A stretch of 64,000 nt of DNA from Malacoraja senta (Eukaryota): contig CM075982.1 of assembly GCA_038087875.1 (NCBI GenBank), positions 14,942,001 through 15,006,000 of the forward strand, given 5' to 3'. Both the position numbers and the translations under genes were made by a program. How positions within the stretch are numbered: the stretch's first letter is position 1; the number at the start of each line of letters is the position of its first letter. The notes below the pieces were generated by a model, which saw only the letters and a program-made list of their open reading frames with translations, searched no databases and had not been told where the DNA came from. Shown in pieces: positions 28,859 through 60,876 of this stretch.

Positions 28859-29884
28859 CTAAATCTTTGGAACAATGGTTACACTTGACTCACTATTGAA
28901 TTGGGTGCTGCTGGCAGCTATTGGCAGCTTGTTACAACAGGCCACACCTTTGATGGCATTAATGAGCTTTGAACGATATTTGGTGCCAGCGTAAAAATAC
29001 ACAAAAGGATCCAGAACATTATTGGCGTAAAGGGCAAGAACCAAACAGTAGTAAACCACTCCGATTTGTTGGTAATTTTTGCAGCTCTTGACACTCACAA
29101 CGGACGCAATTAAACGCGTTACATTTAAAGGAAGAAAGCATATTACAAAGATGCACAATATCACCATCATTATCCTGACAGCATGTCGGCCTTTTTCTGA
29201 ATGAGCAGTTAATGTCAAATTGGCCAATTTCCTTTGAATAAGTAAAGTTGACACCAGCAAGGATATAAATGGAATTCCAAAGCTCAGAATAAAAAATACG
29301 ATAGTGACAGAGAGCAAATCTTCCTCTATATTTGGTTGATTGACGCTCATACAATGTATTTTTCCATTCAATTCAAAAACATTCATTTAAAAAAAAGACG
29401 GAAATGCGAATAAACCAGCTAACAACCAGATCAAGACACAAATGACAATGGTACATTTCTTTGTAACCCTGCTTTGCGAGTGGATTGGCTTGATGATCAT
29501 GTAACATCGATAATTGCTGATGCATGTCAGGAAGAAGACACTTGCCAACACGGTGCAATACATCATGAATGTTTGGAGTTTGCACACAAAGTTTCCAAAT
29601 ATCCAATAATTGCTGTTGCTGTGGTAAATTATTACGAGAGGATAGGTGAGTGTGAAAAGCAAGTCGCCCATGCACAGATTCAACATCAAAATGTCAATTG
29701 GGGTCTTTTTCTTCACGTGCGAGCAAAATATCCATAGGGCCAGACTGTTGAAGCTTGCAGCTAAAATGAAGAAGATTGTAAGGGTCGGAGGCATCATTCT
29801 TGTGAGGAACTGTTCATCCAGCAAACATGTTCTATTCATTGTGGCTATGATTGATGAATTGCCTGTTTCTTCAGTAGGAGCCAT
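28859..29884 (-). pseudogene. P2Y-like GPCR copy A1, full length (342 codons) but with an in-frame TAA at codon 166 (29387-29389)
   Basis: ORFs 29387..29884 and 28859..29386 abut in the same frame; the two intact paralogues have AGA (Arg) at this codon. Confidence 0.85.
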
Positions 29885-30331
29885 CTATGACAAAGAATAA
29901 GAACCAATATAATTTAAATTGACCAACCCTTCTCTAGCATTGCGTGACTTTTTGGTGATGAGCAAACAGTGCTGTAGAACATTGGATAATGGCTGCAGAC
30001 CTGCTTTACTATAATACTTTGCACTTGGTCTGTTTCACACTGGCTTTAGTGGAGCTTCATCAGTTAATAAAATGAGACAAAGCCATTAAAGTGTGTTTTT
30101 GAATTCATTCCTGTAAATTTAAAGCTGTGATGGTCCCACTGATAAGTCTCGGACTCAAAGACTTCTGTACATTGTGTCCTCTTCCATTTTGTTCACTGCC
30201 ATCCCATTGTCCAATCCCCACCCCACGCACACACCTGCTTCCTATCACTCATAGCCTATCCCCTGAATCTCCACCCCTCTGCGTTTGATTTTGGTTGGGA
30301 CTTAGCAAATTTCTTTTGAAAAATGAAGTAC

Positions 30332-30710
30332 AGAGTGGCGCAGCTGAGAGAGCTGCTGTCTTACAGCACCAGAGACCCAGGTTCGATCCTGACCATGGGT
30401 GCTGTTTGTGTGAATTGTGCACGTTCTTCTTGAGACCACATGGGTTTGCTCCAAGTGCTATAGTTCCCCCCCCCCCCCACGTCCCAAAGACATGCTGATT
30501 AATTTGGTTAAGGTTAATTGGCCTCTGTAAATTGTGCCCTAAATCATAAGGTTATAAGGTCATATGATAGGAGAAGAATTAGGCCATTCAGCCCATCAAG
30601 TCTACTCTGCCATCCTCAGATATGGTGCCCAAAATTGCTCATGTGTAGGGAATGGATGCGAAAGTTGGATAACATAGAACTAGTGCGATCGGGTGATTGA
30701 TGGTCGGCGT
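30332..30710 (+). mobile_element. tRNA-derived SINE with a short nested CR1-tail fragment, upstream of GPCR A1 (paralogues ~45367-45740 and ~61330-61705)
   Basis: gtggcgcagctg A-box-like and ggttcgatcc B-box; body similar to 6030-6331. Confidence 0.72.
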
Positions 30711-30711
30711 G

Positions 30712-30817
30712 GCATCTCTGAAGATCATGGATAGGTGACGTTTCAGATCAGGACACTTCAACAGACTGACGAAGGGTCACAACCTGAAACATCACCTATC
30801 CATGTTCTCCAGAGATG
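30712..30817. repeat. Inverted repeat of two head-to-head Penelope-like termini (paralogues ~45740, ~50283, ~61706)
   Basis: catggataggtgacgtttcag ... ctgaaacatcacctatccatg. Confidence 0.7.
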
Positions 30818-32037
30818 ATGCATGACCTGCTGAGTTACTCCAACAGTTTGTGTCTTTCTTTGTAAACCAGCAGCTGCAGTTCCTTGCTTCTCCAGCACTT
30901 AATTAGAACGTATGGCTTTGACAAAAAGCCACCACAGTCACATGTCTGCCACCATAGTCCCCTAAGCGGAAACTTGCATTCTGAGCTCTGCCACACCAGG
31001 TATAGAGAGAAAACAATTCACAAATATTCTTAAAGAGCATCGTAACATCCCCACCAACTAATGGTTATTCCTGGCCATAAGTAGCTGAAAATAACAAGGG
31101 AGCATTCATGATATCATTGAGAACCAGCAGGAAGATCCTGACAATATGGTACTTGGACTCCCAAAGCTGAACTTTATTTTGAACTCTGTTATGGGAGATC
31201 ACTAGGTGGAAAAAGAAACCGAGCAAAGCCTCTTCATAAATAATGAAACATTGTGACTGATTCTGGCCTCTGAGCGCTTAAGATTCTCTGGCCTGTTTGC
31301 TCTTAAAATGGAGGATTGTGATATGTTGAGAGCCTGGGGCCATTCAGGGGAAGTGCACAAACTGCCGCATGAATGATGGAAGGATTGTACCAATCTCCTG
31401 AGCGCCAAACCACCCACCCTGACCCCCACCTCCCCAACCCCATCTCACATTCTTGCCTCAGTTGAGACAGTTTGCCAGTCCCTCACTGGCCCCATCAGTC
31501 ACTCTTGAACACAGCAAAGCAGAGTGGAAGCAGTCGTTGTCTTCCCCCAAGCTACTGCTAACGGAAAAAAATAATGTTCCCTACGATAGATTTTTAATAA
31601 CTATTTTTCTGTTTTACAAACATGAGGATGTTAGCGGGTTCAGAAGGTTTGATGAGAAGGAAGGGATGGATAAGCATGTTCTTTTTTCCCTGGTGTGCAT
31701 GAGACTGAGAGGTCTGTAATAATCTCGAGGGGGATAGTAGATAAGTTGAATAGTCACGGTCTTTTGGGGAGTTTAAAAGTAGACGGCACAGATTGAAGGT
31801 GAGAGGGGGGAAGATTTTAAAAAGACCTGAGTGGCAATTTTTCACTCAGAGGGTGGTGAAGCGAACTGCCAGGAAAAGGGGTATTATGATCATTAAAACA
31901 CGAGACACAAGAGAATGCAGATGATGGAATCTTGAGCAAATAACAAGCTGATGGATGAACTCAGGTCTGTCAGCTTCTATGCGGGGAAATGGACATATGC
32001 GGGGAAATGGAAATGCTTCTATGCGGGGAAATGGAAA

Positions 32038-32999
32038 TCGAGGAGGAGCCGCCATCTTGGAGGAACGGCTGCTAAACAGCAGCCGTCCGTCAAATTCACT
32101 TTTTCTTTAGTTTTAGCTTTTTTTATTTCTTTGTTTGTTTGGGGAATTTTGACTTTTAATGTGGGGGGGTAAGGGAGAAACTATTTCTGGGTCCCTACCT
32201 GGTCGGTGAGGCAGCTTTTTCTCCAGGCTACCTCGTCGACCCGTCCTCGTGGCCTACCAGCGGGCATGGAGTGCCATTTCCTGACGGGGACCGCCCAGCA
32301 CCTTCAGCTTCGGTCGGCGGCACAGCGCTGGAGCGCTATCGTGAAGCGGAGCGGGCGATGCCTTGCCTGGGTCGCCGCGCTGGATCGACGCGCTGGAGCT
32401 CCGGTATGCGGTGACCGCCGACATCAACACCTCCGGGCTGCGGGACTGCGGAGCGACCAGCCGCGGGCGGCGGCGCCGACTTTTACTTCAGGAGCCTCAT
32501 GGCTCCAAACCGGCGCGGCCCTGTCGGCTTCAGGTGCCATCGACTGCTGGGAAACCGGCCGTTCCAGCCGCTGCGAGGACTCTCCCGACGGCCGGGACCA
32601 TCGGGCCTCCGTAGAGGCAACTGTGGCGGCCTCGATGGGCCTGACTCTGGGGAGAACTGGGGTTGGGGACTGGACATTGTGCCTTCCCCCACAGTGGTGG
32701 TCATTGTGGGGGGATGATTTTTGTGTGCTGTGCCTGTTAGTCTGTGTGCAAGATGGCGGTCGGAGGGGAGAGTGGACGCTAGCGCGAATTGGCTGCCGCT
32801 GCTCTCTCCTCAAATTGTGTTTCTTATTTTCTTTTTGTGCTTTTGTACTTGAATTCTGTCCTTGATTTGTGTACTGTGTGTTGTTATATTTAATTTACTC
32901 CGATTATGTGTTTTGTATTTCTGTGATTCTATGCCTTGTAAGGTGTCCTTGGGTTTTAGAAAGGCGCCAGTAATTAAAATGAATTATTATTATTATTAT
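32038..32999 (+). mobile_element. GC-rich non-autonomous retroposon with an L2-type (TAT)n tail
   Basis: Absent from the paralogous sites (ggggaaatggacataatgac at ~35590, 46623, 50950, 62590); tail resembles 25790-25840. Confidence 0.8.
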
Positions 33000-33769
33000 A
33001 ATGACATTCCTGGTTGGGACCTTCTCCAGTTACGTAAAAGACACTTGGATGGGTGCAAGGATAGGAACATTTTGGCGGGATATGGGTCAGGCGCAGGTAA
33101 GTGGGACTACTCAGTTAGGCAACTTGGTTGGTATGCACGGGTTGGGCCAAAGCACCTGTTTTCATGCTGTATACATCTATGACCCTACTCAATAAGTGAT
33201 CTGAATTTTAGAAATGGAGATGATTGCTTACGCTGCTTTGTCGTCCCAGTGCAGCAGCGACAGTGCTCAGCAAGAATATCTATTGAAACTTGTTTCACAA
33301 CACTTCCTATGTGGATGATGAAACTTAAGGAGGCCCAAAATTGGGAAGAAAATTCAACATCCTGCATGTCTGAAAGTTACCAAATGTTTTGTTTTTAAAT
33401 CAGGAAAGGAGGTAACTGTCAAGTTACTGAAAGACGAAAGGAAAGATGATTTCATAAATAGTTTGATTTGTTTGTCAATTCTGCTTTTACAGTAAGTTAA
33501 GAAGTTAATCCACACTCAAAATTTTTAAAAACCTGATTGAACTTGTTATTTCACAGCCTTGTGTACAGGTATGGCTGTGTCACACTTATGCCACTGAGCT
33601 AGTAAACGTAGATCCTGCAATAATACAGAAAACTAATTTCAATACTTGTATGTTTGAAATTTTACATTCACTTGCAATAAATAATGCTCATTTGTAAAAG
33701 TGATCACAAAGCAGAGAAGTTTACATTCTCATGTGTAGGAAGTAATTGCAGATGCTGGTTTACACCAAG

Positions 33770-33906
33770 ATAGACACAAAATGCTAGAGTTATTCAGTGA
33801 GACTGGCAACATCTCTGGATAGAGGTTTACACAAATGATAGACACAAATGTCTTATCCAGAGATGTTGCCTGTCCCATTGAGTTACTCCAGCATTTTGTG
33901 TCTATG
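33770..33906. repeat. Palindromic (hairpin) repeat element; paralogues at ~40070, ~47550, ~55020, ~63560
   Basis: atagacacaaaatgct...catctctggata / tatccagagatg...agcattttgtgtctat. Confidence 0.7.
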
Positions 33907-35038
33907 TTCAGCTTACATTCTCAGTTGGGTTCATAAATGTCCTTTGGCAAAGGAGATTGGCTTTGATTCATTTGTCGCCGAATGGTTGACCTGGTTTGAC
34001 TTCAGTGACTCTAGTCCCAAAATGGCAGACTGCGACGACCTTCGTAAACGACCTTTCATACTTGAGCAACTTGGGGATGCGCAACATTTTCCTGCCATGG
34101 TCACCTGCAAACTGAGTTGATGTTTGGGAGGTGTCAGATTAGAATGTTGCTGCAAATGTTCAGGCAGATGATACAAGAGAAAATGTGGCAACACCATTGG
34201 ATTATTGGATCATGGAATAAGAGGGATGGTAAATGACTGAAGACTTGTAGTAAATACCGTACACTGAGGTATAGAGACCTTGAAATCTGTTGGCAAACAA
34301 AATGTATAAAGCTTGAGAATTAAGAATGCAAAAAGACTTGATAAAGACAGGTGTGAAGTATCAGCGAGGTCCTATTTGCTACGTTGCATAGACCATAAAC
34401 TATTGAGGAAGAGTTTTTTAAATTCATTCTAGGATGTGGAAATCCACCTCCTGTGCACTGGCAAGGTCTCTGGTGTGATTTTTTTTAAACCACTGTCTTT
34501 TTGAGTCCTTATCTGACTTTGCCATTTTTCTCTCTCTCTCTCTTCCTTCCTTCCAGTTTTCATACTTAAGTGAATGGATGTTCAACAACTGTCTTGGATT
34601 CAATATTTTTATTTGTATATATAGATACATTCATGGGTACAACGATAAAAGAGCATCAGGATATGACAAAGCAAAACAATTTGCTGAAAAGTTTCAAGTG
34701 CCTTAAATGCTTATTTCAGAGACATATTTAGGGAAGCATCACATAATCATTCACTTTTGAACTTAGCTAAAAACAACGGCAAGCATTTGTCGGCATTAAA
34801 TTAGTAAAAGACTGGCCCATTATTCTGTTTTTGACTAGTTAAAGAATGATGCTGTCCATCCCTCTGTGCCTGATCCATGGCATCAGTAATGGTGAGCCTG
34901 ACCATTGCACAGGTCATCTAGCAAGCCTAAAGTGTGACATTTGACTTGAAGTGCAAATTAATACACAGATATTACTGCATAAAATGCATTATTTTGAGTT
35001 AACATTGGCTGAATAACAGCATTTTCTAAATCTTTGGA

Positions 35039-35420
35039 TCAAAGGTCACACTTTTGATTCACTGTTGGATTGGGTGCTGCTGGCAGCTTGTTACAAAATG
35101 CCAAACCTTTGATGGCATTAATGAGCTTTGAACGATATTTGGTGCCAGCGTAAAAATACACAAAAGGATCCAGAAAACTATTGGCATAAAGGGCAAGAAC
35201 GCAACAGTAGTAAACCACTCCAATTTGTTGGTGATTTTTGCATCTCTTGACACTCACAACGGACACAATTAAACGTGTTACATTTATAGGAAGAAAGCAT
35301 ATTACAAAGATGGACAATATCACCATCATCATCTTGACAGTATGTCGGCATTTTTCTGAATGAGCAGTTAATGTCAAATTGGCCAATTTTCCTTTCAATA
35401 AGTAAAGTTGACACCAGCAA
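35039..35420 (-). pseudogene. P2Y-like GPCR copy B1, 3' fragment only (end of TM5 to stop), with a +1 frameshift near 35390
   Basis: Near-identical to 48816-49197; the 5' two-thirds are replaced by a rearrangement junction at ~35421. Confidence 0.92.
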
Positions 35421-36424
35421 CTTTATGTCCATCCCCTCCTTCTCATCAAACCTTCTGAACCCGCTAACATCCTCATGTTTGTAACGGAAAAAAATAATGT
35501 TCACTACGATAGATTTTTAATAAGTATTTCTGTTTTTAATCACTATTTCTGAACTCGGGTCAGTCAGCTTCTATGCGGGGAAATGGACATAATGACATTC
35601 CTGGTTGGGACCCTTCTCCAGTTACGTAAAAGACACTTAGATAGGTACATGGAATGGAAAGTTTTGGAGGGATATGGGTCAGGTGCAGGTAACTGGGACT
35701 ACTCAGTTAGGCAACCTGGTCGGTATGCACGGGTTGGGCCAAAGCGCCTGTTTTCATGCTGTATACCTCTATGACCCTACTCATTGGGCTGGGAGATTGC
35801 AACCTTCACGTGATACGCCCTGTTTCAACGAATACAATCAATCTGGCGTGCACAATCAAATAAGTTCAAATAGAACAAGTTGTCCTACAACTTTAAGCTG
35901 TGCACGCCATACGCAAGAAGAAGTCCCTACTCATTAAGTGATCAGAAGTTTAGAAAAGGAGATGATTGCTTTCCAGTCTGCCTTGACGTCCCAGTGCAGC
36001 AGCGACAGTGCTCAGCAAGAATATCTATTGAAACTCGTTTCACAACTCTTACTATTCCTTATGTAGATGATGAAACTTAGGGAGGCCCAAAACTGGGAAT
36101 ATAATTCAACATCCTGCATGTCTGAAAGTTACCAAATGTTTTGTTTTTTAATCAGGAAATGAGCTAACTGTCATGTTACTGAATGACGAAAGGAAAGATG
36201 ATTTCATAAATAATTTGATTGTTTGTCAATTCTGCGTTTCCAGTAAGTTCAGAAGTTATTCCATACTGAGCATTGAACTTGTTATTTCACAGCCTTGTGT
36301 ACAGGTATGGCTGTGTCACACATACCACTGAGCTACTAAACTTGGAGCCTGCAATAATACAGAAAACAAATTTCAATACTTGTATGTTTGAAGTTTTACA
36401 TTCATTTCCAATAAATAATGGTCA

Positions 36425-39400
36425 TGAAGCGAAATCATATTTTTTTATTCGCAAAACAAACAGAAACCCGTGACAACTGCGTGCCTATTCGAGCTTAAGC
36501 ACACAGCTCCTGTCGCTGGGAGGAGTGTTGATAACTAAAACTCCGCGAACGAACCACGGCGGTCACGTGACCGTGCCGACCAAAGATGAGGGTTCTGCCT
36601 TCCCAGCCCCACCACTAGTTGGCGCTACCGGACCCCGCCCAGAACCAGAGGAAAGGAAATGAGCAGGAGTCCGAATCAGGCGGCCAGACCGAGTGGAGAT
36701 AGGCATAACAGGTGCAACCGGTGAAAGTGGGTCGGCCAGTGGACGACCTCTACGCCGGGGTTGGGCTGCCCCCGAGCCGCAGGAAGGAAATCACCGGGTA
36801 CTTTCAGAGGGGAGCCATGAACCAGTTCAGCAGATGAGGTGTCCAAATCCACCTAAGGTGCCATTCGGATCCCCAGCAACACCCAAGGTAACACATCCAC
36901 CCAATCAGGGCCCGTGAGCCACGCTTTCAACGAAGATTTCAGGTGCCGGTGAAACTGCTCGACCACCCTGTTGGCCTGAGGATGGTACACAGTTGTGTGA
37001 TGCAGCTGAGCGCCGTACAGCTGAGCCATGGCCGACCACAGGGCAGAGGTGAACTGAGCACCACGGTCTGAAGAGATGTCGGCGGGAACTCCAGAACGTG
37101 CTACCCAGTGGGCCGCGAGAGCCCGAGCACAAGTCGCGGAAGAGGTGTCAGGAAGCGTGATGGTCTCGGGCCACCGCGTGAAATGGTCCACAATCGTGAG
37201 CAGGTGGGTGACACCTCGGGACGGCAGCAGAGGACCCACCAGGTCGACATGAATGTACTCGAACCGGTGTTGACGGACAACGAAATCCTGGAGCGGCGCA
37301 CATACATGCCGCTGGATCTTGGACATCTGGCATGGAATGCAGGCCCTGTCCCAGGCCCCAACCTGCTTGCGGAGGCCATGCCAGATGAACTTGGCCGCCA
37401 CCAACGCAGTAGTCGCTCGGATGGAAGGTGCCGCTGTTGGCGAGCGGACCAGGGGTCGGACACCTTCGTGAGCACCCTCCAGGAAATACCGGAAGTGCCG
37501 AACTGCCAAATAGAGAGCCAGGAGCTCACGGTTGAAAGCACTGTAGTTCCACTCTGGGGGGCGCAGGCGTCGGCTGAAAAAAGCGAGCGGCTGCCAACGA
37601 CCATCAATAAACTGCTCGAGGACCCCCCCGACTGCAGTATCAGAAGCTTCGACAGTGAGGGCGGTGGGGACAGCAGCCCGCAGGTGCACGGGTATGGTGG
37701 CGTTAGCGAGCGCCTCAGTGGCCCCGCCAAAAGCGGCCGTGGTCTCCGCGTCCCACACTAGGTCCCGCTGCTTGCTGGCCAGACACTGGAACAAAGGCCA
37801 CATGACCCGGGCCTTCGCTGGCATAAAACGGTGATAGAAGTTGATCATCCTCACAAATTCCTGGAGCCCTTTAAAGTTGTGGGGCCGGGGAAACTCCCGA
37901 ATCGCCTCCACCTTGGCGGGGGTAACATGGAATCTAAACTAAACTGGCACCTGGCGGCATTAATGACGAAACCGTGGTCCCGGAGGTGCTGGAACAATGC
38001 TCCTGCCGGGAGCAGCCGGTGACCGGAATGTCACCCAGATAAATAAATACAAAGTCCAACCCCCGGCCAACCTTGTCCATAAGCCACTGAAAAGCATGCG
38101 CGGCATTCTTGAGGCCGTACGGCATCCTCAACCACTCAAACAGGCCGAACGGGGTAATGATGGCAGTCTTAAGCACATCACCGGGGTGGACGGGGATCTG
38201 GTGGCAACCACGCACCAGATCAACCTTGGAGAATATTTTAGCCCCGTCCAAATGGGCCGTGAAGTCCTGGATGTGCGGGACTGGGTAGTGGTCAGCGGTC
38301 GTGACGGTGTTAAGGCTGCGGTAGTCTCCACAACGCCTCCACCCGCTGGACGACTTGGGACTCATATGGAGTGGGGAAGCCCATGGGCTGCTGGAGCGCC
38401 GCACAATACCCATATCCTCCATCCGCTGAAACTCCTCCTTAGTCAAACGCAGCTTGTCGGGCGGGAGCCTGCGCGCCCGTGCGTGAACCGGAGGATGTGA
38501 TGGACGACACCATGCTTAGGGGCGGCCGAGTGAAACTGAGGGGTCAGGATCTCCGGGAACTCGGCCAGAATCGGATCGTACATGCTGTCTGCATCAGACA
38601 CCGACCCGTGATGCGGGCCGGAGGAAACCGCGGACCACGGTGACGCAAGCTGGAGGGACTCGGGATGAACGAGGCGCTGGCCCCGGACGTCAACCAGGAG
38701 AGAAAAGGCCCGTAAAAAAGCGGTGCCAAGCAATGGCTGGGAGACGTCCGCGATAGTAAACGGCCATGAGTAATGGCGAGAGTCGAGAACGAGAGGAAAG
38801 GTGCGAGTACCATACGTGCGTATGGGGCAGCCGTTGACGGGTGGGGCTCACTTACCAGAACGAGTATCAGCCCCGGACGGAGGTAAGTTGCTGAGTTCAG
38901 CGCCAGAGTCCACTAGAAATCGTAGCCCGGAATGGCGGTCCCAGACGTAGAGGCGATGTTTTTGGTCGACTGCGATAGCCTCTACTGGCGATCGGCTGAG
39001 GCATTTCCCAGACGCTCGCAGGGAGCACAGCATCGGTGGGCCTCCGCACCCTAACGTTGGTGGTAGTAACACCACTGGCGCTTGCTGTGATCCACGGCGG
39101 TCGGCTGCAGCGCGGCGCTGTCGTTCGATGGTGGCAGGGATCGCCGAGGCCGTTGCGGAGCAGCGGACTCCGGTTGATGGAAACACCATCCTGCTGCTTG
39201 GCGAGCCGCAGCTCCTCCGCAAGTTCGGCGAGCTGCAGGTGGTCGGCGAAGGAGCATCCGGCGCGGAGCAGGCGGATGTCATCGGGCATCTGCTCCAGGA
39301 AAGCCTGCTTCAACATGAGACAAGGCTGGTGGCCGTCCATGCGCGACAGCATCTCGCTCATTAACACCGACGGCTTACGATCGCCAAGGCCGTCCATGTG

Positions 39401-39960
39401 TAAGAGCTGGGCCCCGCGATTGGGCGGCTGGGCCCGAAGGTGCGCAGCAGCAGCGCCTTGAGATCCTCAAATTTATTGATGGCGGGCGGATTCTGCAGGT
39501 AAGGGAGCAAACGGGTGGCAGTGTCCTGGCTGAGCGCACCAACCATGTAGAAATACCGGGTGGAATCCTCAACAATCTCGCGGATCTCGAACTGGGCCTC
39601 GATGTGTTGAAACCACACATGAGGCTGAACAGCGCAGAAAACGGCAGATCAAGGGAAACCGCGGTCTGCTGGGCGGGGTAGGTATCGAGGTTTTCGGCGG
39701 CGTTCATGTCCAGACCCGAAAAAAGTTTGGATTGTCGGGGTCACCACAGAAGCAAGACCGGGCGGGTTGAGTGAAATAGTTTTTTATTCGCACAAACAAA
39801 CAGAAACCCGTAAAAACCGCATGTCAATCGAGAACACAGCTCCTGTCGCTGGGAGGAGCGCTGATAACTAAAACTCCGCGAACGAACCCCCTGCGGTCAC
39901 GTGACCGTGCCGACCAATGATGAGGGTTCTGTCTTCCCAGCCCCACCGCGTGCCGCGACA
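36425..39960 (-). mobile_element. Degenerate Ty3/Gypsy LTR retrotransposon with both LTRs (36425-~36629 and 39748-39960), gag-PR-RT-RH-IN
   Basis: gag WFQHIEAQF/GDRKPS; protease FLVDSGAE; RT SPWASPLH...DYRSLN...YLGD; RNase H YSAFNRELLA; integrase CIPCQ, HVDLVGP, SDRGAQF; 4-bp TSD gtca/gtta; frameshifts. Confidence 0.95.
39734..39746 (-). other. Primer-binding site, tRNA-Trp (TGGTGACCCCGAC); second copy at 54684-54696
   Basis: 13-nt complement of the vertebrate tRNA-Trp 3' end (GTCGGGGTCACCA), 1 nt inside the 5' LTR. Confidence 0.85.
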
Positions 39961-43905: not shown

Positions 43906-44913
43906 TCACACTCTTGACTCACTGCTGGATTGGGTGCTGCTGGCAGCTATTGGCAGCTTGTTACAACAGGCCACACCTTTGATGGCATTAACGAGCTTTG
44001 AACGATATTTGGTGCCAGCATAAAAATACACAAAAGGATCCAGAACATTATTGGCGTAAAGGGCAAGAACGCAACAGTAGTAAACCACTCCGATTTGTTG
44101 GTAATTTTTGCAGCTCTTGACACTCACAACGTACATAATTAAACGTGTTACGTTTATAGGAAGAAAGCATATTACAAAGATGCACAATATCACCATCATC
44201 ATCCTGACAGCATGTCGGCCTTTTTCTGAATGAGCAGTTAATGTCAAATTGGCCAATTTCCTTTGAATAAGTAAAGTTGACACCAGCAAGGATATAAATG
44301 GAATTCCAAAGGTCAGAATAAACAACATAATAGTAAAAGTGAGTATATCTTTCTCTACATTTGGTTGATTGAAGCTCATACAATGTATTTTTCCATTCAG
44401 TTCAAAAACATTGACTCTATAAAAAGACGGAAATGCGAATAAACCAGCTAACAACCAAATCAAGACACAAATGACAATGGTACATTTCTTTGTAACCCTG
44501 CTTTGCGAGTGGATAGGCTTGATGATCATGTAACATCGATAATTGCTGATGCATGTCAGGAAGAAGACACTTGCCAACACGATGCAATACATCATGAATG
44601 TTTGGAGTTTGCACACAAAGTTTCCAAATATCCAATAATTGTTGTTGCTGTGGTAAATTATTAGGAGAGGATAGGTGAGTGTGAAAAGCAAGTCGCCCAT
44701 GCACAGATTCACCATCAAAATGTCAATTGGGGTCTTTTTCTTCACGTGCGAGCAAAATATCCATAGGGCCAGACTGTTGAAGCTTGCAGCTAAAATGAAG
44801 AAGATTGTAAGGGTCGGAGGCATCATTCTTGTGAGGAACTGTTCATCCAGCAAACATGTTCTATTCATTGTGGCTATGATTGATGAATTGCCTGTTTCTT
44901 CAGTAGGAGCCAT
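43906..44913 (-). CDS. P2Y-like / delta-group class A GPCR, copy A2, intact, 335 aa
   Basis: Seven hydrophobic segments; NLCMGDL (D2.50), WIFGNFVCKL (C3.25), LTCISNYRC, CFLP, DPFVYFYAG; N-terminal and ECL3 cysteines; N-glycosylation sites NSS and NRT. Confidence 0.95.
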   Translation of the reverse strand: MAPTEETGNSSIIATMNRTCLLDEQFLTRMMPPTLTIFFILAASFNSLALWIFCSHVKKKTPIDILMVNLCMGDLLFTLTYPLLIIYHSNNNYWIFGNFVCKLQTFMMYCIVLASVFFLTCISNYRCYMIIKPIHSQSRVTKKCTIVICVLIWLLAGLFAFPSFYRVNVFELNGKIHCMSFNQPNVEKDILTFTIMLFILTFGIPFISLLVSTLLIQRKLANLTLTAHSEKGRHAVRMMMVILCIFVICFLPINVTRLIMYVVSVKSCKNYQQIGVVYYCCVLALYANNVLDPFVYFYAGTKYRSKLVNAIKGVACCNKLPIAASSTQSSSESRV

Positions 44914-47900: not shown

Positions 47901-48815
47901 GTTTGGGAGGTGTCAGATTAGAATTTTGCTGCAAACGTTCAGGCAGATGATACAAGAGAAAATGTGGCAACACCATTGGATTATTGGATCATGGAATAAG
48001 AGGGATGGCAAATGACTGAAGACTTGTAGTAAATACCGTACACCGAGGTATAGAGACCTTGAAATCTGTTGGCAAACAAAATGTATAAAGCTTGAGAATT
48101 AAGAATGCAAAAAGACTTGATAAAGACAGGTGTGAAGTATCAGCGAGGTCCTATTTGCATAGACCATAAACTATTGAGGAAGAGTTTTTTAAATTCATTC
48201 TAGGATGTGGAAATCCACCTCCTGTGCACTGGCAAGGTCTCTGGTGGGATTTGTTTTTTAAACCATTGTCTTTTTGAGTCCTTATCTGACTTTGCCATTT
48301 TTTTCTCTCTCTCTCTTCCTTCCTTCCAGTTTTCATACTTAAGTGAATGGATGTTCAACAACTGTCTTGGATTCAATATTTTTACTTGTATATATAGATA
48401 CATTCATGGGTACAACGATAAAAGAGCATTAGGATATGACAAAGCAAAACAATTCTTGCTGAAAAGTTTCAAGTGCCTTAAATGCTTATTTCAGAGACAT
48501 ATTTAGGGAAGCATCACACAATCATTCACTTTTGAACTTAGCTAAAAACAACGGCAAGCATTTGTCGGCATTAAATTAGTAAAAGAATGGCCCATTATTC
48601 TGTTTTTGACATTAGTTAAAGAATGATGCTGTCCATCCCTCTGTGCCTGATCCATGGCATCAGTAATGGTGAGCCTGACCATTGCACAGGTCATCTAGCA
48701 AGCCTAAAGTTTGACATTTGACTTGAAGTGCAAATTAAAACACAGATATTACTGCATAAAATGCATTATTTTGAGTTAACATTGGCCTAATAACAGCATT
48801 TTCTAAATCTTTGGA

Positions 48816-49820
48816 TCAAAGGTCACACTTTTGATTCACTGTTGGATTGGGTGCTGCTGGCAGCTTGTTACAAAATGCCAAACCTTTGATGGCATTAATG
48901 AGCTTTGAACGATATTTGGTGCCAGCGTAAAAATACACAAAAGGATCCAGAAAACTATTGGCGTAAAGGGCAAGAACGCAACAGTAGTAAACCACTCCGA
49001 TTTGTTGGTGATTTTTGCAGCTCTTGACACTCACAACGGACACAATTAAACGTGTTACATTTATAGGAAGAAAGCATATTACAAAGATGGACAATATCAC
49101 CATCATCATCCTGACAGTATGTCGGCATTTTTCTGAATGAGCAGTTAATGTCAAATTGGCCAATTTCCTTTGAATAAGTAAAGTTGACACCAGCAAGGAT
49201 GTAAATGGAATTCCAAAGGTCAGAATAAACAATATAATATTGGAAGTGAGTAAATCTATCTCTGTAATTGGATGATTGTAGCTCATACAATGTAGTTTTC
49301 CATTCAATTCAAAAACATTGATTCTAAAAAAAGACTGAAATGCGAATAAACCAGCTAACAACCAGATCAAGACACAAATGACAATGGTACATTTCTTTGT
49401 AATCCTGCTTTTGGACTGGATAGGCTTGATGATCACGTAACATCGATAATTGCTGATGCATGTCAGGAAGAAGATACCTGCCACCCCGGAGCAATACATG
49501 AGGAATGTTTGGAGTTTGCACACAAAGTCTCCAAATATCCAATAATTGTTGTTGCTGTGGTAAATTATTACAAGAGGATAGGTGAGTGTGAAAAGCAAGT
49601 CGCTTATGCACAGATTCAACATCAAAATGTCAATTGAGGTCTTTTTCTTCACGTGCGCGCAAAATATCCATAGGGCTAGACTGTTAAAGCTTGTAGCTAA
49701 AATGAAGAAGATTGTAACGGTCGGAGGCATCATTCTTGTGAGGAACTGTTCATCCAGCAAACATGTTCTATTCATTGGGGCTATGATTGATGAATTGCCT
49801 GTTTCTTCAGTAGGAGCCAT
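48816..49820 (-). CDS. P2Y-like / delta-group class A GPCR, copy B2, intact, 334 aa
   Basis: Same 7TM motifs as A2; different C-tail. Confidence 0.95.
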   Translation of the reverse strand: MAPTEETGNSSIIAPMNRTCLLDEQFLTRMMPPTVTIFFILATSFNSLALWIFCAHVKKKTSIDILMLNLCISDLLFTLTYPLVIIYHSNNNYWIFGDFVCKLQTFLMYCSGVAGIFFLTCISNYRCYVIIKPIQSKSRITKKCTIVICVLIWLLAGLFAFQSFFRINVFELNGKLHCMSYNHPITEIDLLTSNIILFILTFGIPFTSLLVSTLLIQRKLANLTLTAHSEKCRHTVRMMMVILSIFVICFLPINVTRLIVSVVSVKSCKNHQQIGVVYYCCVLALYANSFLDPFVYFYAGTKYRSKLINAIKGLAFCNKLPAAPNPTVNQKCDL

Positions 49821-51785: not shown

Positions 51786-54700
51786 TGAAGCGAAATCATA
51801 GTTTTTTATTCGCAAAACAAACAGAAACCCGTGACAACTGCGTGCCTAGTCGAGCTTAAGCACACAGCTCCTGTCGCTGGGAGGAGTGTTGATAACTAAA
51901 ACTCCGCGAACGAACCACGGCGGTCACGTGACCGTGCCGACCAAAGATGAGGGTTCTACCTTCCCAGCCCCACCACTAGGTGGCGCTACCGGACCCCGCC
52001 CAGAACCAGAAGAAAGGAAATGAGCAGGAGTCCGAATCCGGCGGCCAGACCGAGTGGAGATAGGCATAACAGGTGCAACCGGCGAAAGCGGGTCGGCCAG
52101 TGGACGACCTCTACGCCGGGGTTGGGCTGCCCCCGAGCCGCAGGAAGGAAATCGCCGGGTACTTTCCGAGGGGAGCCATGAACCAGTTCAGCAGATGAGG
52201 TGTCCAAATCCACCTAAGGTGCCATTCGGATCCCCAGCAACACCCAAGGTAACACATCCACCGGATCTTGGACATCTGGCATGGAATGCAGGCCCTGTCC
52301 CAGGCCCCAACCTGCTTGCGGAGGCCATGCCAGATGAACTTGGCCGCCACCAACGCAGTAGTCGCTCGGATGGAAGGTGCCGCTGTTGGCGAGCGGACCA
52401 GGGGTCGGACACCTTCGTGAACACCCTCCAGGAAATACCGGAAGTGCCGAACTGCCAAATAGAGAGCCAGGAGCTCACGGTTGAAAGCACTGTAGTTCCA
52501 CTCTGGGGGGCGCAGGCGTCGGCTGAAAAAAGCGAGCGGCTGCCAACGACCATCAATAAACTGCTCGAGGACCCCCCCCGACTGCAGTATCAGAAGCATC
52601 GACAGTGAGGGCGGTGGGGACAGCAGCCCGCAGGTGCACGAGTATGGTGGCGTTAGCGAGCGCCTCAGTGGCCCCGCCAAAAGCGGCCGTGGTCTCCGCG
52701 TCCCACACTAGGTCCCGCTGCTTGCCGGCCAGACACTGGAACAAAGGCCACATGACCCGGGCCTTCGCTGGCACAAAACGGTGCTAGAAGTTGATCATCC
52801 TCACAAATTCCTGGAGCCCTTTAATGTTGTGGGGCCGGGGAGACTCCCGAATCGCCTCCACCTTGGCGGGGGTAACATGGAATCTAAACTAAACTGGCAC
52901 TTGGCGGCATTAATGACGAAACCGTGGTACCGGAGGTGCTGGAACAATGCTCCTGCCGGGAGCAGCCGGTGACCAGAATCTCACCCAGATAAATAAATAC
53001 AAAGTCCAACCCCCGGCCAACCTTGTCCATAAGCCACTGAAAAGCATGCGCAGCATTCTTGAGGCCGTACGGCATCCTCAACCACTCAAACAGGCCGAAC
53101 GGGGTAATGATGGCAGTCTTAAGCACATCACCGGGGTGGACGGGGATCTGGTGGCAACCACGCACCAGATCAACCTTCGAGAATATTTTAGCCCCGTCCA
53201 AATGGACCGTGAATTCCTGGATGTGCGGGACTAGGTAGCGGTCAGCGGTCGTGACGGTGTTAAGGCGGCGGTAGTCTCCACAAGGCCTCCACCCGCTGGA
53301 CGACTTGGGACTCATATGGAGTGGGGAAGCCCATGGGCTGCTGGAGCGCCGCACAATACCCATATCCTCCATCCGCTGAAACTCCTCCTTAGTCAAATGC
53401 AGCTTGTCGGGCGGGAGCCTGCGCGCCCATGCGTGAACCGGAGGATGTGATGGACGACACCATGCTTAGGGGCGGCCGAGTGAAACTGAGGGGTCAGGAT
53501 CTCCGGGAAATCGGCCAGAATCGGATCGTACATGTTGTCTGCATCAGACACCGACCCGTGATGCGGGCCGGAGGAAACCGCGGACCACGGTGACGCAAGC
53601 TGGAGGGACCCGGGATGAACGAGGCGCTGGCCCCGGACGTCAACCAGGAGAGAAAAGGCCCGTAAAAAAGCGATGACTAGCAATGGCTGGGAGACGTCCG
53701 CGATAGTAAACGGCCATGAGTAATGGCGAGAGTCGAGAACGAGAGGAAAGGTGCGAGTACCATACGTGCGTATGGGGCAGCCGTTGACAGGTGGGGCTCA
53801 CTTACCAGAACGGGTATCAGCCCCGGACGGAGGTAAGATGCTGAGATCAGCGCCAGAGTCCACTAGAAATCGTAGCCCGGATTGGCGGTCCCAGACGTGG
53901 AGGCAATGTTTCTGGCCGACTGCGATAGCCTCTACTGGCGATCGGCTGAGGCATTTCCCAGACGCTCGCAGGGAGCACGGCATCGGCGGGCCTCCGCACC
54001 CCAACGTTGGTGGCAGTAACACCACTGGCGCTTGCTGTGATCCACGCCGGTCAGCTGCGGCGCGGCGCTGTCGTTCGATGGTGGCAGGGACCGCCGAGGC
54101 CGTTGCAGAGCAGCGGACTCCGGTTGATGGAAACACCATCCTACTGCTTGGCGAGCCGCAGCTCCTCCGCAAGTTCGGCGAGCTGCAGGTGTACGGCGAA
54201 GGAGCACCCGGCGCAGAGCAGGCGGATGTCATCGGGCATCTGCTCCAGGAAAGCCTGCTTCAACATGAGACAAGGCTGGTGGCCGTCCATGCGCGACAGC
54301 ATCTCGCTCATTAACACCGACGGCTTACGATCCCCAAGGCCGTCCATGTGTAAGAGCTGGGCCGCGCGATCGGGCGGCCGAGCCCGAAGGTGCGCAGCAG
54401 CAGCGCCTTGAGATCCTCAAATTTATTGATGGCGGGCGGATTCTGCAGGTAAGGGAGCAAACGGGTGGCAGTGTCCTGGCTGAGCGCACCAACCATGTAG
54501 AATGTAGAGGTGGAATCCTCAACAATCTCGCGGATCTCGAACTGGGCCTCGATGTGTTGAAACCACACATGAGGCTGAACCGCCCAGAAAACGGCAGATC
54601 AAGGGAAACCGCGTTCTGCTGGGCGGGGTAGGCATCGAGGTTTTAGGCGGCGTTCATGTTCAGACCCGAAAAAAGTTTGGATTGTCGGGGTCACCACTGA

Positions 54701-54910
54701 AGCGAGACCAGGCGGGTTGAGTGAAATAGTTTTTTATTCGCAAAAACAAACAGAAACCCGTAAAAAACGCATGAGTAGTCGAGAACACAGTTCCTGTCGC
54801 TGGGAGGAGCGCTGATAACGAAAACCCTGCGAAAGACCCCCCGCGGTCATGTGACCGTGCCGACCAATGATGAGGGTTCTGTCTTCCCAGCCCCACCGCG
54901 TGCTGCGACA
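51786..54910 (-). mobile_element. Duplicated copy of the same Gypsy insertion (LTRs 51786-~51990 and 54698-54910) with a ~410-bp integrase-core deletion at ~52261
   Basis: Same flanks and TSD, and the same shared lesions, as 36425-39960. Confidence 0.95.
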
Positions 54911-56382
54911 GTTATTTGTAAAACAGGTGCCGCGACAGTTATTTGTAAAACTGATCACAAAGCAGAGAGGTTTACATTCTCATGTGTAGGAAGTAATTGC
55001 AGATGCTGGTTTCCACCAAAATAGACACAAAATGCTGGAGTTACTCAGTGAGACAGGCAACATCTCTTGATAGAGGTTTACACAAAACATAGACACAAAT
55101 GTCTTATCCAGAGATGTTGCCTGTCCCACTGAGTTACTCCAGCATTTTCTATCTTCAGCTTACATTCTCAGTTGGGTTCATAAATGTCCTTTGGCAAAAG
55201 AGATTGGCTTTGACTCATTTGCCGCCGAATGGTTGACCTGGTTTGACTTCAGTGACTCTAGTCCCAAAATGACAGACTGCGACGACCTTAGTAAACAACC
55301 TTTCATACTTGAGCAACATGAGGATGCGCAACATTTTCCTGCCATGGTCACCTGCAAACTGAGTTGATGTTTGGGAGGTGTCAGATTAGAATTTTGCTGC
55401 AAATGTTCAGGCAGATGATACAAGAGAAAATGTGGCAACACCATTGGATTATTGGATCATGGAATAAGAGGGATGGCAAATTACTGAAGACTTGTAGTAA
55501 ATACCATACACCGAGGTATGGAGACCTTGAAACCTGCTGGCAAACAAAATGTATAAAGCTTGAGAATTAAGAATGTGAAAAGACTTGATAAAGACAGGTG
55601 TGAAGTATCAGCGAGGTCCTATTTGCTACGTTGCATAGACCAGAAACTACTGAGGAAGAGTATTTTTAATTCATTCTCGGATGTGGACATTATTGGTCAT
55701 TCCAGTTGTTATAGCCAGCTCTTATTCCCACTCTTTTGAACCATCGGTACTGTTTATTGGAGGCTTCCAGGATTATTACACAAGGCAGTGGAGGAACAGG
55801 TGCATTGGGAGAACAACTTGGAGGTGTTCCCAGTCACTTGCAGGTAGAGCAAATAACAGAGCCTTGTGATACTCTGCAGGGTAGCTTCGTAGGTAGTTCA
55901 CATAGTGACCTTGCAGGTGGGGAGAATTAGGTTGGCAGGTAGTGTTGGCAAAATAGTGTATCTGCCATGGTGTGGTCAGTAGCGTTTTCGTCTCTGATCC
56001 GAAGATTTAATGTTCAAGTTCCACAACGATGTTGTTCCTCACAAATTGAGATGGATGGCGAAGTTCAGCCCCAAAGGCAGGCTGCACCGCAGTAACTGTG
56101 ATATTTCAGACAAGATTTTAAACATACAAGATACTATGGTGCGGGTTCAGAGAAGGCAGGGATTATATCCATTTTAAATTTATTTTCGCTAGTGTTGAGC
56201 TTTTCGAGTGTTGCTGGGGCTTTTCACTATGGTGATCCAGTTAGGTCATTGATCAATTGTGATGTCCAAGATATTGATCCTGCGGAACGTGAACCTCCAA
56301 GATATTGGTGCTGAAGAACTTGAACAGATGATTTGCTGGCGATTGGGTTATTTGCAGATGAGACAAGGAATGAAGATACAAG

Positions 56383-57259
56383 GAATATAGAAACATAGAA
56401 ACATATAAAATAGATGCAATAGTAGGCCATTCAGCCCTTCAAGCCAGCACCGCCATTCAATATGATTGTGGCTGATCATCCAAAATCTGTACTCCATTCC
56501 TGCTTTTTCCCCATATTCCTTGATTCCTTTAGCCCTAAGATCTAAACCTAACCCTCTCTTGAAAACACCCAATGAATTGGCCTCCACTGCCTACTGTGGC
56601 AGAGAATTCCACAGATTTATAACTCTCTGGGAGAAAAGATTTTCCTCATCTCAGTCCTAAATGGCCTACACCTTATTCTTAAACCGTGACCCCTAGTTCT
56701 GGACTCCCCCAACGTTGGGAAATTTTTTCCTGCATCTTGCCTGTCCAATCCCTTAAGAATTGTATATGTTTTTATCAGATTCCCTCTCATCCTTCTAAAC
56801 ACCAGTGAATACAAGCCCAGTCGACCCATTCTTTCATCATATGTCAGTCCTGCCTTTCCGGGAACTTACCTGGTGAACCTACACTGCACCTCCTCAAGAA
56901 TTTCCTTCCTCAAATTAGGAGACCAAAACTGCACACAGTACTCCAGGTGCGGTCTCACCAGGGCCCTGTACAACTGCAGTAGGACCTCCTTGCTCCTATA
57001 CTCAAATCCTCTCACTGTGAAGCCCAGCATGCCATTAGCTTTCTTCACTGCCTGCTGTACCTGCATGCTTACTTTCAGTGACCGATGTACAAGGACACAC
57101 AGGTCTCGTTGGACCTCTCATTTTCCTAATCTGACACCATTCAGATAAAAATCTGCCTTCTTATTTTTGCCACCAAAGTGGATAACCTCACATTTATCCA
57201 CATTATACTGCATCTGCCATGCATCTGCCCACTCACCCAACCTATCCAAGTCACCCTGC
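56383..57259 (-). mobile_element. CR1 LINE fragment at the U2/U3 junction
   Basis: LYRALVRPHLEYCVQFWSP...RLGLYSL...ESRTRGH; (atagaaac)n tail. Confidence 0.9.
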
Positions 57260-59869
57260 AGTTGTGGGAAGAAAATTCATGGAAACTGTCTAAATTTCTC
57301 ATTTAGCTATGATTTCTGTTTAAAGAGTTGATAAAATAGCAACATCTCATGTGACCCAATATAAATTGTGTGTTTATTTGCTAACTATGGCGCATTGAAA
57401 ATGTATTTTGGAGTCCTCAGACTTGATTTAAACACTTTTTGCCAGCTTCTGAATTGTTCTGTAGATCAATACATTATGAAGAATACATGCTGACATATCA
57501 GTAAATGATCTACTTTAAAAAACCCAGCAGGTTTATGCCATCTGGCTGTAATTTAATAATGAAGGTGAAAGGGAGATGGGAGACATGAAAGCAAATATGC
57601 ATTCTACTTTGGTCTTGGCTCCTCAGAAGTTCCGTGTTTCTTCCTGGTGGTACTCCTGTGAAAGGGATAGAAATGGGCAAGAAAAAAGAAAAGCAGACAA
57701 ATACAGAAACAGGGAATGAAGATTAGTTTACAAAAGATGAAGAAAGACAGTGGGAAAGAGAGCATCAACTTAACATTGGGGTCAAGGAAAGACCTTGCAC
57801 GTCGCGGGCCTGTTTCCACCAATCTTTCCACCACCACGCACAAGAAGCGCAAGACAGACACCATTGTATGCAGATGCAAGGTAGTGTGTTCAGCTCTGGC
57901 TGAATGACTTCTAATCTTATGTGTGGAAGTGATAAGATGAAGAAGAACCTAACATTAGAGTTGTTGGAAATCAGAATAATGAGCAATTGTCTGTTGGGCG
58001 TTCTATTGTGGTTTGGAAATATTTGGGAGATGAAGGATAACCAGGGTTTATCGAGTTTGCACCATTGGGTGGGTTGAGTCAAGAGGTTCGTGACCAAGAG
58101 GGAGGAGGATAACTGGTGAGTGGGAGTACTCTAGCAGATATTCTGCAGGGTTTCAGGAAGACAGATCATCACCACCTTCTCGTGGACATTTTGGGATGGA
58201 CAGTAAATGCTGGTCTTGCTAATGCTGGGCAGATCCTGAAAATGGTTGAAATATGGGGATAAGGGCGACAATATCAAGAACGTAGTTTTCAATCCACCTC
58301 ATTAAATTTGGAATCCCAAAGGCTTGCATAGACAGTGAAGCATTTCTCAAATTGGCAGGGTTTAACATACTCATTGCCAAGATTTTTCCAAGACATGATG
58401 GAGCAAACTGAATTGAAGATAAAGGTTGACTGGTCAATTTTTGCATTGTTCCAAAGAAATGCTGTCGCTGTTGTGCAAGTAAACACAGTAGCAAATGGCA
58501 ACTGTGGCAGATTTCTTCTTGTCGGCTTTACTTTAATATCGGCCAAGTAAAGTAGTTAGATTTAAGGTCTCATCTGAAGGAAAGCACCATTATCAGTAGA
58601 GGATTCACTCTCTTGTTCCCAGCTGTTGGGCAAGATTATCCACTTGGGAATCTAGAATGGGATTTGAACCACATCCTTGAGTCTGAGGGGAGAATTTTTT
58701 CTCTCTATTATAGGAAAGTGTGGGAACTGTGTTGATGAGAGTAGATCAGATAGGAACATTTGGGTGCAGACAAAGTTGAAGTGATTTGTTGGAGAGAAAA
58801 ATGAATCCACAGGAGACTGGGTTAGCAGTCCAAATGCAACCATGGACCTTTAGACATGACAATACTGTGGCTATTTGGAGCAGCAGGTTATATTAGAAAA
58901 CATCAAGAAATTTACACCTAATATTGCATTGGATTTATTAATTCAAGTTGAGTTTGCGATGGATTTCCCATCTTTGATTTGAATGATTGGCCTGGTTAGC
59001 AAATTTATGAGGATAACGACAACGCACATTTATGTTCCTTTCAGCCAGTAGCACAAACAACCACCACATCTTAGTTTCACATGTCTATCTGTGCTCCTGT
59101 TCATTGACTTTATTTTCTCACGCATTGAACTGATGTCCAAACCATTGCAATGTTTGGTAACACTGATCTTCCAGCTTTCCACTGTCTTCCTGATGCATTA
59201 ATGAAGCTTTTTCTTCTCACCTTCTGAAACTGTCAGGTTCCCATTCTCGTAGTAAATTGGTTTAATAGAGTGCACTGGCAAGAACTCTATTGCGATTATT
59301 TTTTTTTTTAATAAACCACCTGTCTTTTTGATTCCTTATCTGATTGCCATTTTTCTCTCACTCTCTCTTCCTTCCTTCCAGTTTTCATACTTAAGTGAAT
59401 GGATTGTCAACAACGGTGTTAGATTCAATATTTTTATTTGTATAGATAGATACATTCATCGGAGCAACGATAAAAGAGGATCAGGATATGACAAAGCAAA
59501 ACAATTCTTGCTGAAAAGTTTCAAGTGCATTAAATGCTTATTTCAGAGACATTTTTAGGGAAGCATAATACGATCATTCACTTTTGAACTTAGCTAAAAA
59601 CAACGGCAAGCATTTGTAGCCTTTAAATTAGTAAAAGAATGGCCTGCTAGTCTGTTTTTGACATTAGTTAGAGAATGATGCTGTCCATTCCTCTGCCTGA
59701 TCCATGGCATTAGTAATGTTGAGCCTGAACCATTGGACAGGTCATCTAGCCTAAAGTTTGACATTTGCCTTGAAGTGCAAATGAAAACACAGCTAATACT
59801 GCACAAAATGCAGTATTTTGAGTTAACTTTGGCCTAATAACAGCATATTCTAAATCTTTGGATCAATGA

Positions 59870-60876
59870 TCACACTCTTGACTCACTGCTGGATTGGGTG
59901 CTGCTGGCAGCTATTGGCAGCTTGTTACAACAGGCCACACCTTTGATGGCATTAATGAGCTTTGAACGATATTTGGTGCCAGCATAAAAATACACAAAAG
60001 GATCCAGAACATTATTGGCGTAAAGGGCAAGAACGCAACAGTAGTAAACCATTCTGATTTGTTGGTGATTTTTGCAGCTCTTGACACTCAAAACGGTCAT
60101 AATTAAATGTGTTACGTTTATAGGAAGAAAGCATATTACAAAGATGCACAATATCACCATCATATACTGACAGCATGTCGGCCTTTTTCTGAATGAACAG
60201 TTAATGTCAAATTGGCCAATTTCCTTTGAATAAGTAAAGTTGACACCAGCAAGGATATAAATGGAATTCCAAAGGTCAGAATAAACAACATAATAGTAGA
60301 AGTGAGTATATCTTTCTCTACATTTGGTTGATTGAAGCTCATACAATGTATTTTTCCATTCATTTCAAAAACATTGACTCTATAAAAATACGGAAATGCG
60401 AATCAAACCAGCTAACAACCAGATCAAGACACAAATGACAATGGTACATTTCTTTGTAACCCTGCTTTTGCGAGTGGATAGGCTTGATGATCACGTAACA
60501 TCGATAATTGCTGATGCATGTCAGGAAGAAGACACTTGCCAACGGTGCAATACATCATGAATGTTTGGAGTTTGCACACAAAGTTTCCAAATATCCAATA
60601 ATTGTTGTTGCTGTGGTAAATTATTACGAGAGGATAGGTGAGTGTGAAAAGCAAGTCGCCCATGCACAGATTCACCATCAAAATGTCAATTGGGGTCTTT
60701 TTCTTCACGTGCGAGCAAAATATCCATAGGGCCAGACTGTTGAAGCTTGCAGCTAAAATGAAGAAGATTGTAAGGGTCGGAGGCATCATTCTTGTGAGGA
60801 ACTGTTCATCCAGCAAACATGTTCTATTCATTGTGGCTATGACTGATGAATTGCCTGTTTCTTCAGTAGGAGCCAT
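59870..60876 (-). pseudogene. P2Y-like GPCR copy A3 with four indels (-2 at ~60541, +1 at ~60466, +1 at ~60404, -1 at ~60163)
   Basis: Alignment to A2; 1007 vs 1008 nt agrees with net -1; premature stop at 60424. Confidence 0.88.

Follow-up and report, generated by a model that had tools for sequence, protein, structure and literature searches.

The window studied here is a 64,000-nucleotide stretch of the genome of the skate Malacoraja senta (contig CM075982.1, positions 14,942,001 to 15,006,000). Between about 28.9 and 60.9 kb it contains five homologous single-exon copies of a class A G protein-coupled receptor (GPCR) gene, all on the minus strand, which were recognised by tblastn and by repeat-family analysis with a similarity far beyond chance. 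We propose that these copies probably make up a tandem cluster, shaped by gene birth and death, of an orphan receptor of the delta (purinergic-like) branch of class A GPCRs that is restricted to elasmobranchs, a putative receptor for something other than nucleotides. That the family is a separate clade on a long stem, outside P2Y1/2/4/6/OXGR1 and not nested in HCAR, can be held with high confidence. The ligand class is proposed more tentatively: the residues of the pocket would suit a non-nucleotide, probably an anionic small molecule or a lipid.

Intact receptor genes and relics

One receptor open reading frame (ORF) was used as tblastn query against the window, which contains no N. Matches were obtained at 28880-29884, 35042-35401, 43909-44913, 48819-49820 and 59873-60876 (copies c1 to c5, respectively), and a search of the window for further receptor copies or other delta-branch paralogues returned none besides these five. 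The ORF is intact in two of the five copies, c3 and c4; c1, c2 and c5 are relics. The copies fall into two types, A and B. The intact type-A gene, c3 (43906-44913), has a single coding exon for 335 amino acids with a Pfam 7tm_1 domain (PF00001, E = 3.4e-47), and its product is 93% identical to a protein of Leucoraja erinacea (P0001). The intact type-B gene, c4 (48816-49820), likewise has a single coding exon, for 334 amino acids (7tm_1, E = 6.8e-46), and its product is 94% identical to a protein of Amblyraja radiata (P0002).

The relics have been damaged in different ways. In c1, a type-A pseudogene (28877-29884), an in-frame TAA at codon 166 (SFF*MNVFELNG) splits the gene into open frames of 165 and 175 amino acids in the ORF listing; the usual stop codon is gone, and the ORF continues to 28859. 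In c5, also a type-A pseudogene (59870-60876), DNA alignment revealed four frameshifting indels (-2, +1, +1 and -1). Finally, c2 is a type-B fragment (approximately 35039-35420) that keeps only the C-terminal 120 codons or so, from transmembrane segment 5 (TM5) to the end; close to its 5' edge it has a +1 indel. Its tblastn match covers residues 215-334 only, with 96% identity to c4, and in the DNA alignment homology begins near codon 208; the N-terminal part of c2, looked for across the whole window, is absent. A preliminary description of this DNA had counted five paralogues of 334-341 amino acids. The five homologous copies are indeed there, but as two intact genes and three dead relics, and the length of 341 amino acids was the product of reading through the stop codon of c1 and of the loss of its normal stop. 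The motifs quoted in that description (WIFGxFVCKLQ, LTCISNYRC, DPFVYFYAG) were all found, together with the cysteines of the N-terminus and of extracellular loop 3 (ECL3).

The copies are part of a higher-order tandem array that extends from 28400 to the window end at 64000, and in which a unit of 15-16 kb, made of a B gene, an A gene, a retroelement and shared flanks, is present about three times. Direct-repeat analysis gave spacings of 15029 and 15963 bp between the successive type-A copies (c1, c3, c5) and of 13777 bp between the type-B copies (c2, c4), the flanks having been co-duplicated with the genes. A recent segmental triplication of about 15 kb gave rise to the two intact genes and the three dead copies.

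Within type A, the 5' thirds of c1, c3 and c5 (29550-29849, 44579-44878 and 60542-60841) are 99% identical, and the parts that code for extracellular loop 2 (ECL2) and TM5 are far more divergent. Between c1 and c3, the number of synonymous substitutions per synonymous site (dS) is 0 in the 5' third versus 0.14 in the ECL2-TM5 part. This mosaic of near-identical and diverged segments suggests that gene conversion may have taken place among the type-A copies.

Phylogenetic position and distribution of the family

A maximum likelihood (ML) tree of 93 rows was computed with IQ-TREE (LG+C20+F+G4 model with posterior mean site frequencies, PMSF; 1000 ultrafast bootstrap replicates, UFBoot). The elasmobranch family formed a clade with 100/100 support, on a stem of 1.2 substitutions per site. 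It was excluded from the P2Y clade (100/96), which contained P2RY1, P2RY4, P2RY6, OXGR1 and lamprey SUCNR1-like proteins, and was not part of the clade of HCAR2, OXER1 and GPR31 (100/100). A branch supported at 99/96 united the P2Y, PAR and CysLT-like groups, leaving the family out. Two further groups were recovered, a cyclostome clade (100/99) and an orphan clade with gecko, axolotl and skate members (100/100). In approximately unbiased (AU) tests, topologies joining the family with P2RY1 (p = 0.0036), with P2RY2/4 (p = 0.0087) or with the HCAR subclade (p = 6e-5) were rejected. The phylogeny that the preliminary description had called for thus places the family outside these named receptor orthogroups.

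We then examined how widely the family is distributed. At E<=1e-45, a word-indexed protein search returned just 22 clusters (53-93% identity), every one of them from an elasmobranch (17 species of sharks, rays and skates). When chimaera or bony-fish members were sought by a profile-based word search, these 22 proteins were recovered again and no others. When 1.84 billion representatives were searched exhaustively with hmmsearch, the whole family fell in one 50% cluster. Family members scored 526-615 bits per domain, the best outsider, a lamprey 'P2Y1-like' protein, 214 bits, other cyclostome proteins about 170 and true P2RY1 164. No chimaera or bony-vertebrate orthologue was visible to this exhaustive profile search in the protein collections searched, a result that applies at the protein level. 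Some apparent relatives at 178-294 bits, from teleosts, frog and coelacanth (P0024-P0029), were rejected: they are fused two-receptor gene models that score 86-150 bits per domain and belong to other clades.

Database names of the family are heterogeneous. In RefSeq its members are called P2Y1-, P2Y3-, P2Y4-, HCAR2-, HCAR3-, LPAR4- and PAR2-like, seven names that are all wrong as statements of orthology; a protein-atlas look-up of the family gave generic delta-branch names only, and full-text searches found no description of the elasmobranch receptor family in the literature. The suspicion raised at the outset, that this is a lineage-specific family which annotation would mislabel as 'P2Y1-like', therefore proved right on both counts, with members found only in sharks, rays and skates by all three kinds of search, and with seven different '-like' names in place of one.

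The two orphan clades mentioned above lie in the same region of the tree backbone as the family. The cyclostome clade, annotated as 'P2Y1/P2Y4/LPAR6-like' (P0025, P0032, P0052, P0031), includes the best-scoring outsider to the family and also holds a hagfish gene. Two of its lamprey members, P0025 ('P2Y1-like', 505 amino acids) and P0032 ('LPAR6-like'), have consecutive RefSeq accessions, which suggests that they are tandem neighbours. The other clade comprises gecko P0041, axolotl P0070 and P0047 of the skate Rhinoraja (L005), with the labels P2Y2-like, LPAR6-like and P2Y1-like. Since Rhinoraja has its own member, this clade is a paralogue of the elasmobranch family and not an orthologue; it may correspond to a GPR205-type clade of an earlier vertebrate survey (PMC6504862).

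Pocket residues, candidate ligands and rival explanations

Ballesteros-Weinstein numbers were assigned by a gapless count from C101 (3.25), P252 (6.50) and P293 (7.50), and cross-checked by HMMER alignments to the P2Y4, P2Y1 and P2Y2 structures. The residues of the family were tabulated for 24 proteins from the 17 elasmobranch species. The scaffold of the delta branch is retained, with two extracellular pairs of disulfide cysteines, F6.48 (22/24), P6.50, the DPxxY motif and R3.50 (23/24); P252 (6.50), P293 (7.50) and Y296 (7.53) are invariant. So are the cysteines C20, C101, C178 and C268, from which two extracellular disulfides are inferred, one between the N-terminus and ECL3 and the other between C3.25 and ECL2.

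Copy c3 has T3.29, N6.52, R6.55, V7.39 and Y-R-C at 3.49-3.51. These residues had been counted by hand in the preliminary description, correctly, and the pattern is stable over the 24 sequences; the H6.55 reported for one copy is also real, and belongs to the dead copy c5. YRC is present as described, but its replacement of DRY or HRY is no oddity, since HRC is found in P2Y2 and H, Y, D and F all occur at 3.49 within the P2Y clade. At 3.29, the family has T (15 sequences), A (5), V (3) or I (1), hence no arginine in any of the 24, versus R in 20/20 rows of the P2Y clade. At 6.52, N (16), V (5), A (2) and P (1) are found, versus H in 18 of the 20 P2Y-clade rows. Position 7.39 is V (15), L (8) or I (1), the P2Y clade having R in 15 of the 18 rows aligned there (2 of the 20 rows are gapped), and 6.62 is D (13), G (5), S (3) or R (1), versus R in P2Y receptors. 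Position 6.55 is R in 22 sequences and H in two, 2.64 is H in 16 and Y in eight, and 7.43 is Y in 22/24. Lastly, 3.36 is L (11), V (5), I (4) or G (2), and arginine, found in 16/16 rows of the HCAR/OXER1/GPR31 clade, is absent from all 24.

These positions can be read against published structures. Cryo-electron microscopy of P2Y2 and P2Y4 identified Y2.64, R3.29, R6.62 and R7.39 as phosphate contacts conserved in P2Y1R, P2Y2R and P2Y4R (PMC12075631), and in the HCA2 structure R111 (3.36) is the carboxylate anchor, conserved across the HCA family (PMC10043007). Three of the four conserved phosphate contacts (R3.29, R6.62, R7.39) are therefore missing from the family, in agreement with the initial claim that most of the nucleotide-binding residues of P2Y1 are lacking. 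Taken with the residue table, these structures indicate that the ligand anchors by which the two neighbouring groups are defined are both missing from the family, and that only R6.55 is left in the TM core. This pattern is not unique to elasmobranchs, as both neighbouring orphan clades show it: in each of them R6.55 is present, 3.29 and 7.39 are hydrophobic, and R3.36 is missing. The gecko/axolotl/Rhinoraja clade likewise lacks R3.29 and R7.39. Unlike the family, both clades retain H6.52, and their motif is HRY or ERW, with ERW in the cyclostome clade, which also has R2.60.

We suggest the following mode of action. The receptor would signal through G proteins upon binding of a non-nucleotide ligand, whose acid group would be held by R6.55. 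The rest of the TM pocket is predicted to be hydrophobic and rich in tyrosines (Y2.63, Y3.33, Y7.35, Y7.36, Y7.43), and a conserved Lys/His pair in ECL2 is a possible outer contact for the ligand. The proposal of a single cationic anchor, R6.55, would hold for the TM core, and the mono-anionic or lipid ligand predicted from it appears plausible.

Selection on the genes was estimated with the NG86 method as the ratio of non-synonymous to synonymous substitution rates (dN/dS). Between skate, sawfish and sevengill-shark genes it was 0.28-0.43 (p<1e-4, synonymous excess), and between orthologues it was 0.40 for c4 and A. radiata (binomial p = 0.01) and 0.55-0.61 for c3 and L. erinacea. Because the family-wide ratio is about 0.3, the gene is likely to be functional across the family, which these codon comparisons show to be under purifying selection in both sharks and rays, yet fast-evolving for a GPCR. 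Types A and B look redundant in skates. Between c3 and c4, dN/dS was 2.2 in codons 161-215 (ECL2 and TM5) versus approximately 0.9-1.1 elsewhere, but this concentration of divergence in a pocket segment was not significant (15:2 versus 33.5:9.5, small counts; Fisher p = 0.48).

Several observations weigh against the explanation proposed here. The sister position to HCAR/OXER1/GPR31 that the family takes in the ML tree has a support of only 85/54, and AU tests did not reject its union with the whole P2Y clade (p = 0.093) or with the cyclostome clade (p = 0.12, delta log-likelihood 4). Candidate sister groups are therefore HCAR/OXER1/GPR31, which seems weakly favoured, the cyclostome clade and the whole P2Y clade, and with a stem as long as 1.2 substitutions per site, artefacts of long-branch attraction are a risk. 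Nor is the entrance to the pocket hydrophobic throughout, since K3.26 is invariant and two ECL2 residues on the extracellular side, K175 (K/R in 22/24) and H177 (19/24), are conserved. The AlphaFold2 model built on the alignment of the 24 family sequences was poor, its pLDDT (predicted local distance difference test) averaging 64.7. Within skates constraint is weak: orthologues have a dN/dS of 0.40-0.55, types A and B compared with each other reach about 1.2, and just one intact type is left in each of the other two skates.

The family might instead be an elasmobranch branch of HCAR/OXER1/GPR31, a receptor for hydroxy-fatty acids or eicosanoids from which the R3.36 anchor has been lost. We consider this unlikely. 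Besides the sister position in the ML tree, it would account for the residues shared with HCAR1-3, OXER1 and GPR31 and not with P2Y (L1.39, F5.43, Y7.43, hydrophobic 3.29 and 7.39) and for the many members named HCAR2- or HCAR3-like in RefSeq. However, the sister relation is weak and a place inside the HCAR subclade is rejected. The carboxylate anchor R3.36, present in 16/16 rows of that clade, is found in 0/24 family members, and R2.60 (13/16 in the clade) is missing as well; the family also differs by S5.38 in place of W and by YRC in place of DRY. Moreover, rays have separate, genuine HCAR/OXER1/GPR31 members, for instance Mobula P0042.

A bolder extension, also doubtful, is that the family belongs to an ancient vertebrate lineage of the delta branch, with the tandem lamprey genes as cyclostome counterparts and sharks and rays as its sole jawed survivors. 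Such a receptor would sense an anionic lipid or steroid, for instance the sulfated bile alcohol scymnol sulfate, through R6.55 in the tyrosine-rich pocket. If this were true, the ligand and its receptor would be a pair without counterpart in bony vertebrates.

It is improbable that these are strongly diverged nucleotide receptors, forming the sister group of the P2Y1-like clade and still binding nucleotides at a rebuilt site (R6.55, K3.26, K175/H177 of ECL2, Y/H2.64). The closest pairwise matches of the family, at about 30-35% identity, are P2RY1/2/4/6 and OXGR1/SUCNR1, and its top sequence matches in the PDB are P2Y4, P2Y1 and P2Y2 (140-130 bits). It has in common with P2Y1-like receptors the two extracellular disulfides, the CKLQ motif at the top of TM3, F6.48, R6.55, Y7.35 and DPxxY, its YRC resembles the HRC of P2Y2, and a sister position to the whole P2Y clade survived the AU test. 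Against this, the phosphate contacts R3.29 and R7.39 are absent in 24/24 sequences and 6.62 is most often Asp (for the roles of these residues, see PMC12075631), H6.52 is missing, and L1.39, F2.53 and Y7.43 stand where P2Y receptors have Y1.39, Y2.53 and S7.43. In addition, the 99/96 branch parts the family from P2Y, PAR and CysLT-like receptors, and nesting with P2RY1 or P2RY2/4 is rejected.

In the two other skates, the loss of genes looks reciprocal between the paralogues: A. radiata has a B-then-A pair as in the window, in which B is intact and A frameshifted (L002:15144-16145), and L. erinacea has an intact A and no B within 10 kb. The idea that the locus is effectively decaying in M. senta, its two 'intact' ORFs being recent duplicates under neutral drift and not functional receptors, would fit the three dead copies out of five, the A versus B ratio of about 1.2 and this pattern of loss, but it is very improbable, given that c3 and c4 are full length with all family-invariant residues kept, that dN/dS is 0.40 (p = 0.01) and 0.55 against orthologues and about 0.3 over the deep divergences of the family, and that loss, being reciprocal, points to redundancy of A and B and not to functional loss of both.

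Neighbourhood of the cluster and significance

The repeat unit of the array carries a Ty3/gypsy-like retroelement remnant, present at 36853-39707 on the minus strand (Pfam RVT_1, RT_RNaseH_2, rve and Integrase_H2C2) and again, with Pfam matches, at 52111-54411 on the minus strand, where it was co-duplicated with the unit at an offset of about 14950 bp. A matching pair of ORFs (37934-38446 and 52884-53396; repeat family D20) is found in the two copies. Both decayed pol copies were carried along when the 15-kb unit was duplicated, so that the insertion is older than the segmental triplication.

The terminal coding exon of DNA ligase 3 (LIG3) lies at 23072-23317 on the plus strand (Pfam LIG3_BRCT, E = 6.9e-28) and ends in a stop codon; earlier LIG3 exons are probably within window positions 1-23000. 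This exon is 85% identical to that of the sevengill shark Heptranchias, where the gene order is group-A gene, group-B gene, LIG3. LIG3 is tail-to-tail with the receptor cluster, and synteny is kept between shark and skate. The upstream neighbour of the receptor in L. erinacea is a complement factor B/C2-like gene (Sushi, VWA and Trypsin domains; L001:1-2359), which ends at a distance of 7.6 kb. Its exons were searched for in the window and are absent; they are presumably past the window end. On the doubtful reading of an ancient vertebrate lineage, a receptor locus flanked by LIG3 and by such a complement gene, with fast turnover by birth and death, would fit a sensor of metabolites in immune or barrier tissue. 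Around genes of the neighbouring clades (Rhinoraja P0047, lamprey P0025) and Mobula P0042, the 10-kb flanks contained no informative neighbours. Two GC-rich stretches of the window (0.47-0.50), at 26000-28000 and 32206-32865, contain ORFs of 166-219 amino acids without Pfam match and are probably repeat or low-complexity sequence.

On sequence grounds, the family belongs to the delta/purinergic-like branch of class A GPCRs and appears to be neither a P2Y1-like nor an HCAR-type receptor. A survey of Ensembl vertebrates, in which no cartilaginous fish was covered, described 27 new non-human clades of receptors and found the purinergic branch to be the least charted (PMC6504862). The family resembles the non-human 'PUR' orphan clades of that survey (GPR204, GPR205A-C, GPR207, P2RY16) in being a purinergic-branch receptor without human orthologue; these were compared by description only, and in the exhaustive search no bony-vertebrate protein rose above the general delta-branch background. 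As unnamed non-human clades are already common in this branch, the family is an addition to the known picture and not a surprise.

What it adds is an orphan clade confined to sharks and rays and placed between the P2Y and the HCAR/OXER1/GPR31 receptors. Transfer of function from its '-like' names would mislead, for example in studies of purinergic or niacin receptors in sharks and skates. The family could help to explain the exchange of ligand anchors (R3.29/R7.39, R3.36, R6.55) in the course of delta-branch evolution, and its deorphanisation could reveal a signalling molecule specific to elasmobranchs.

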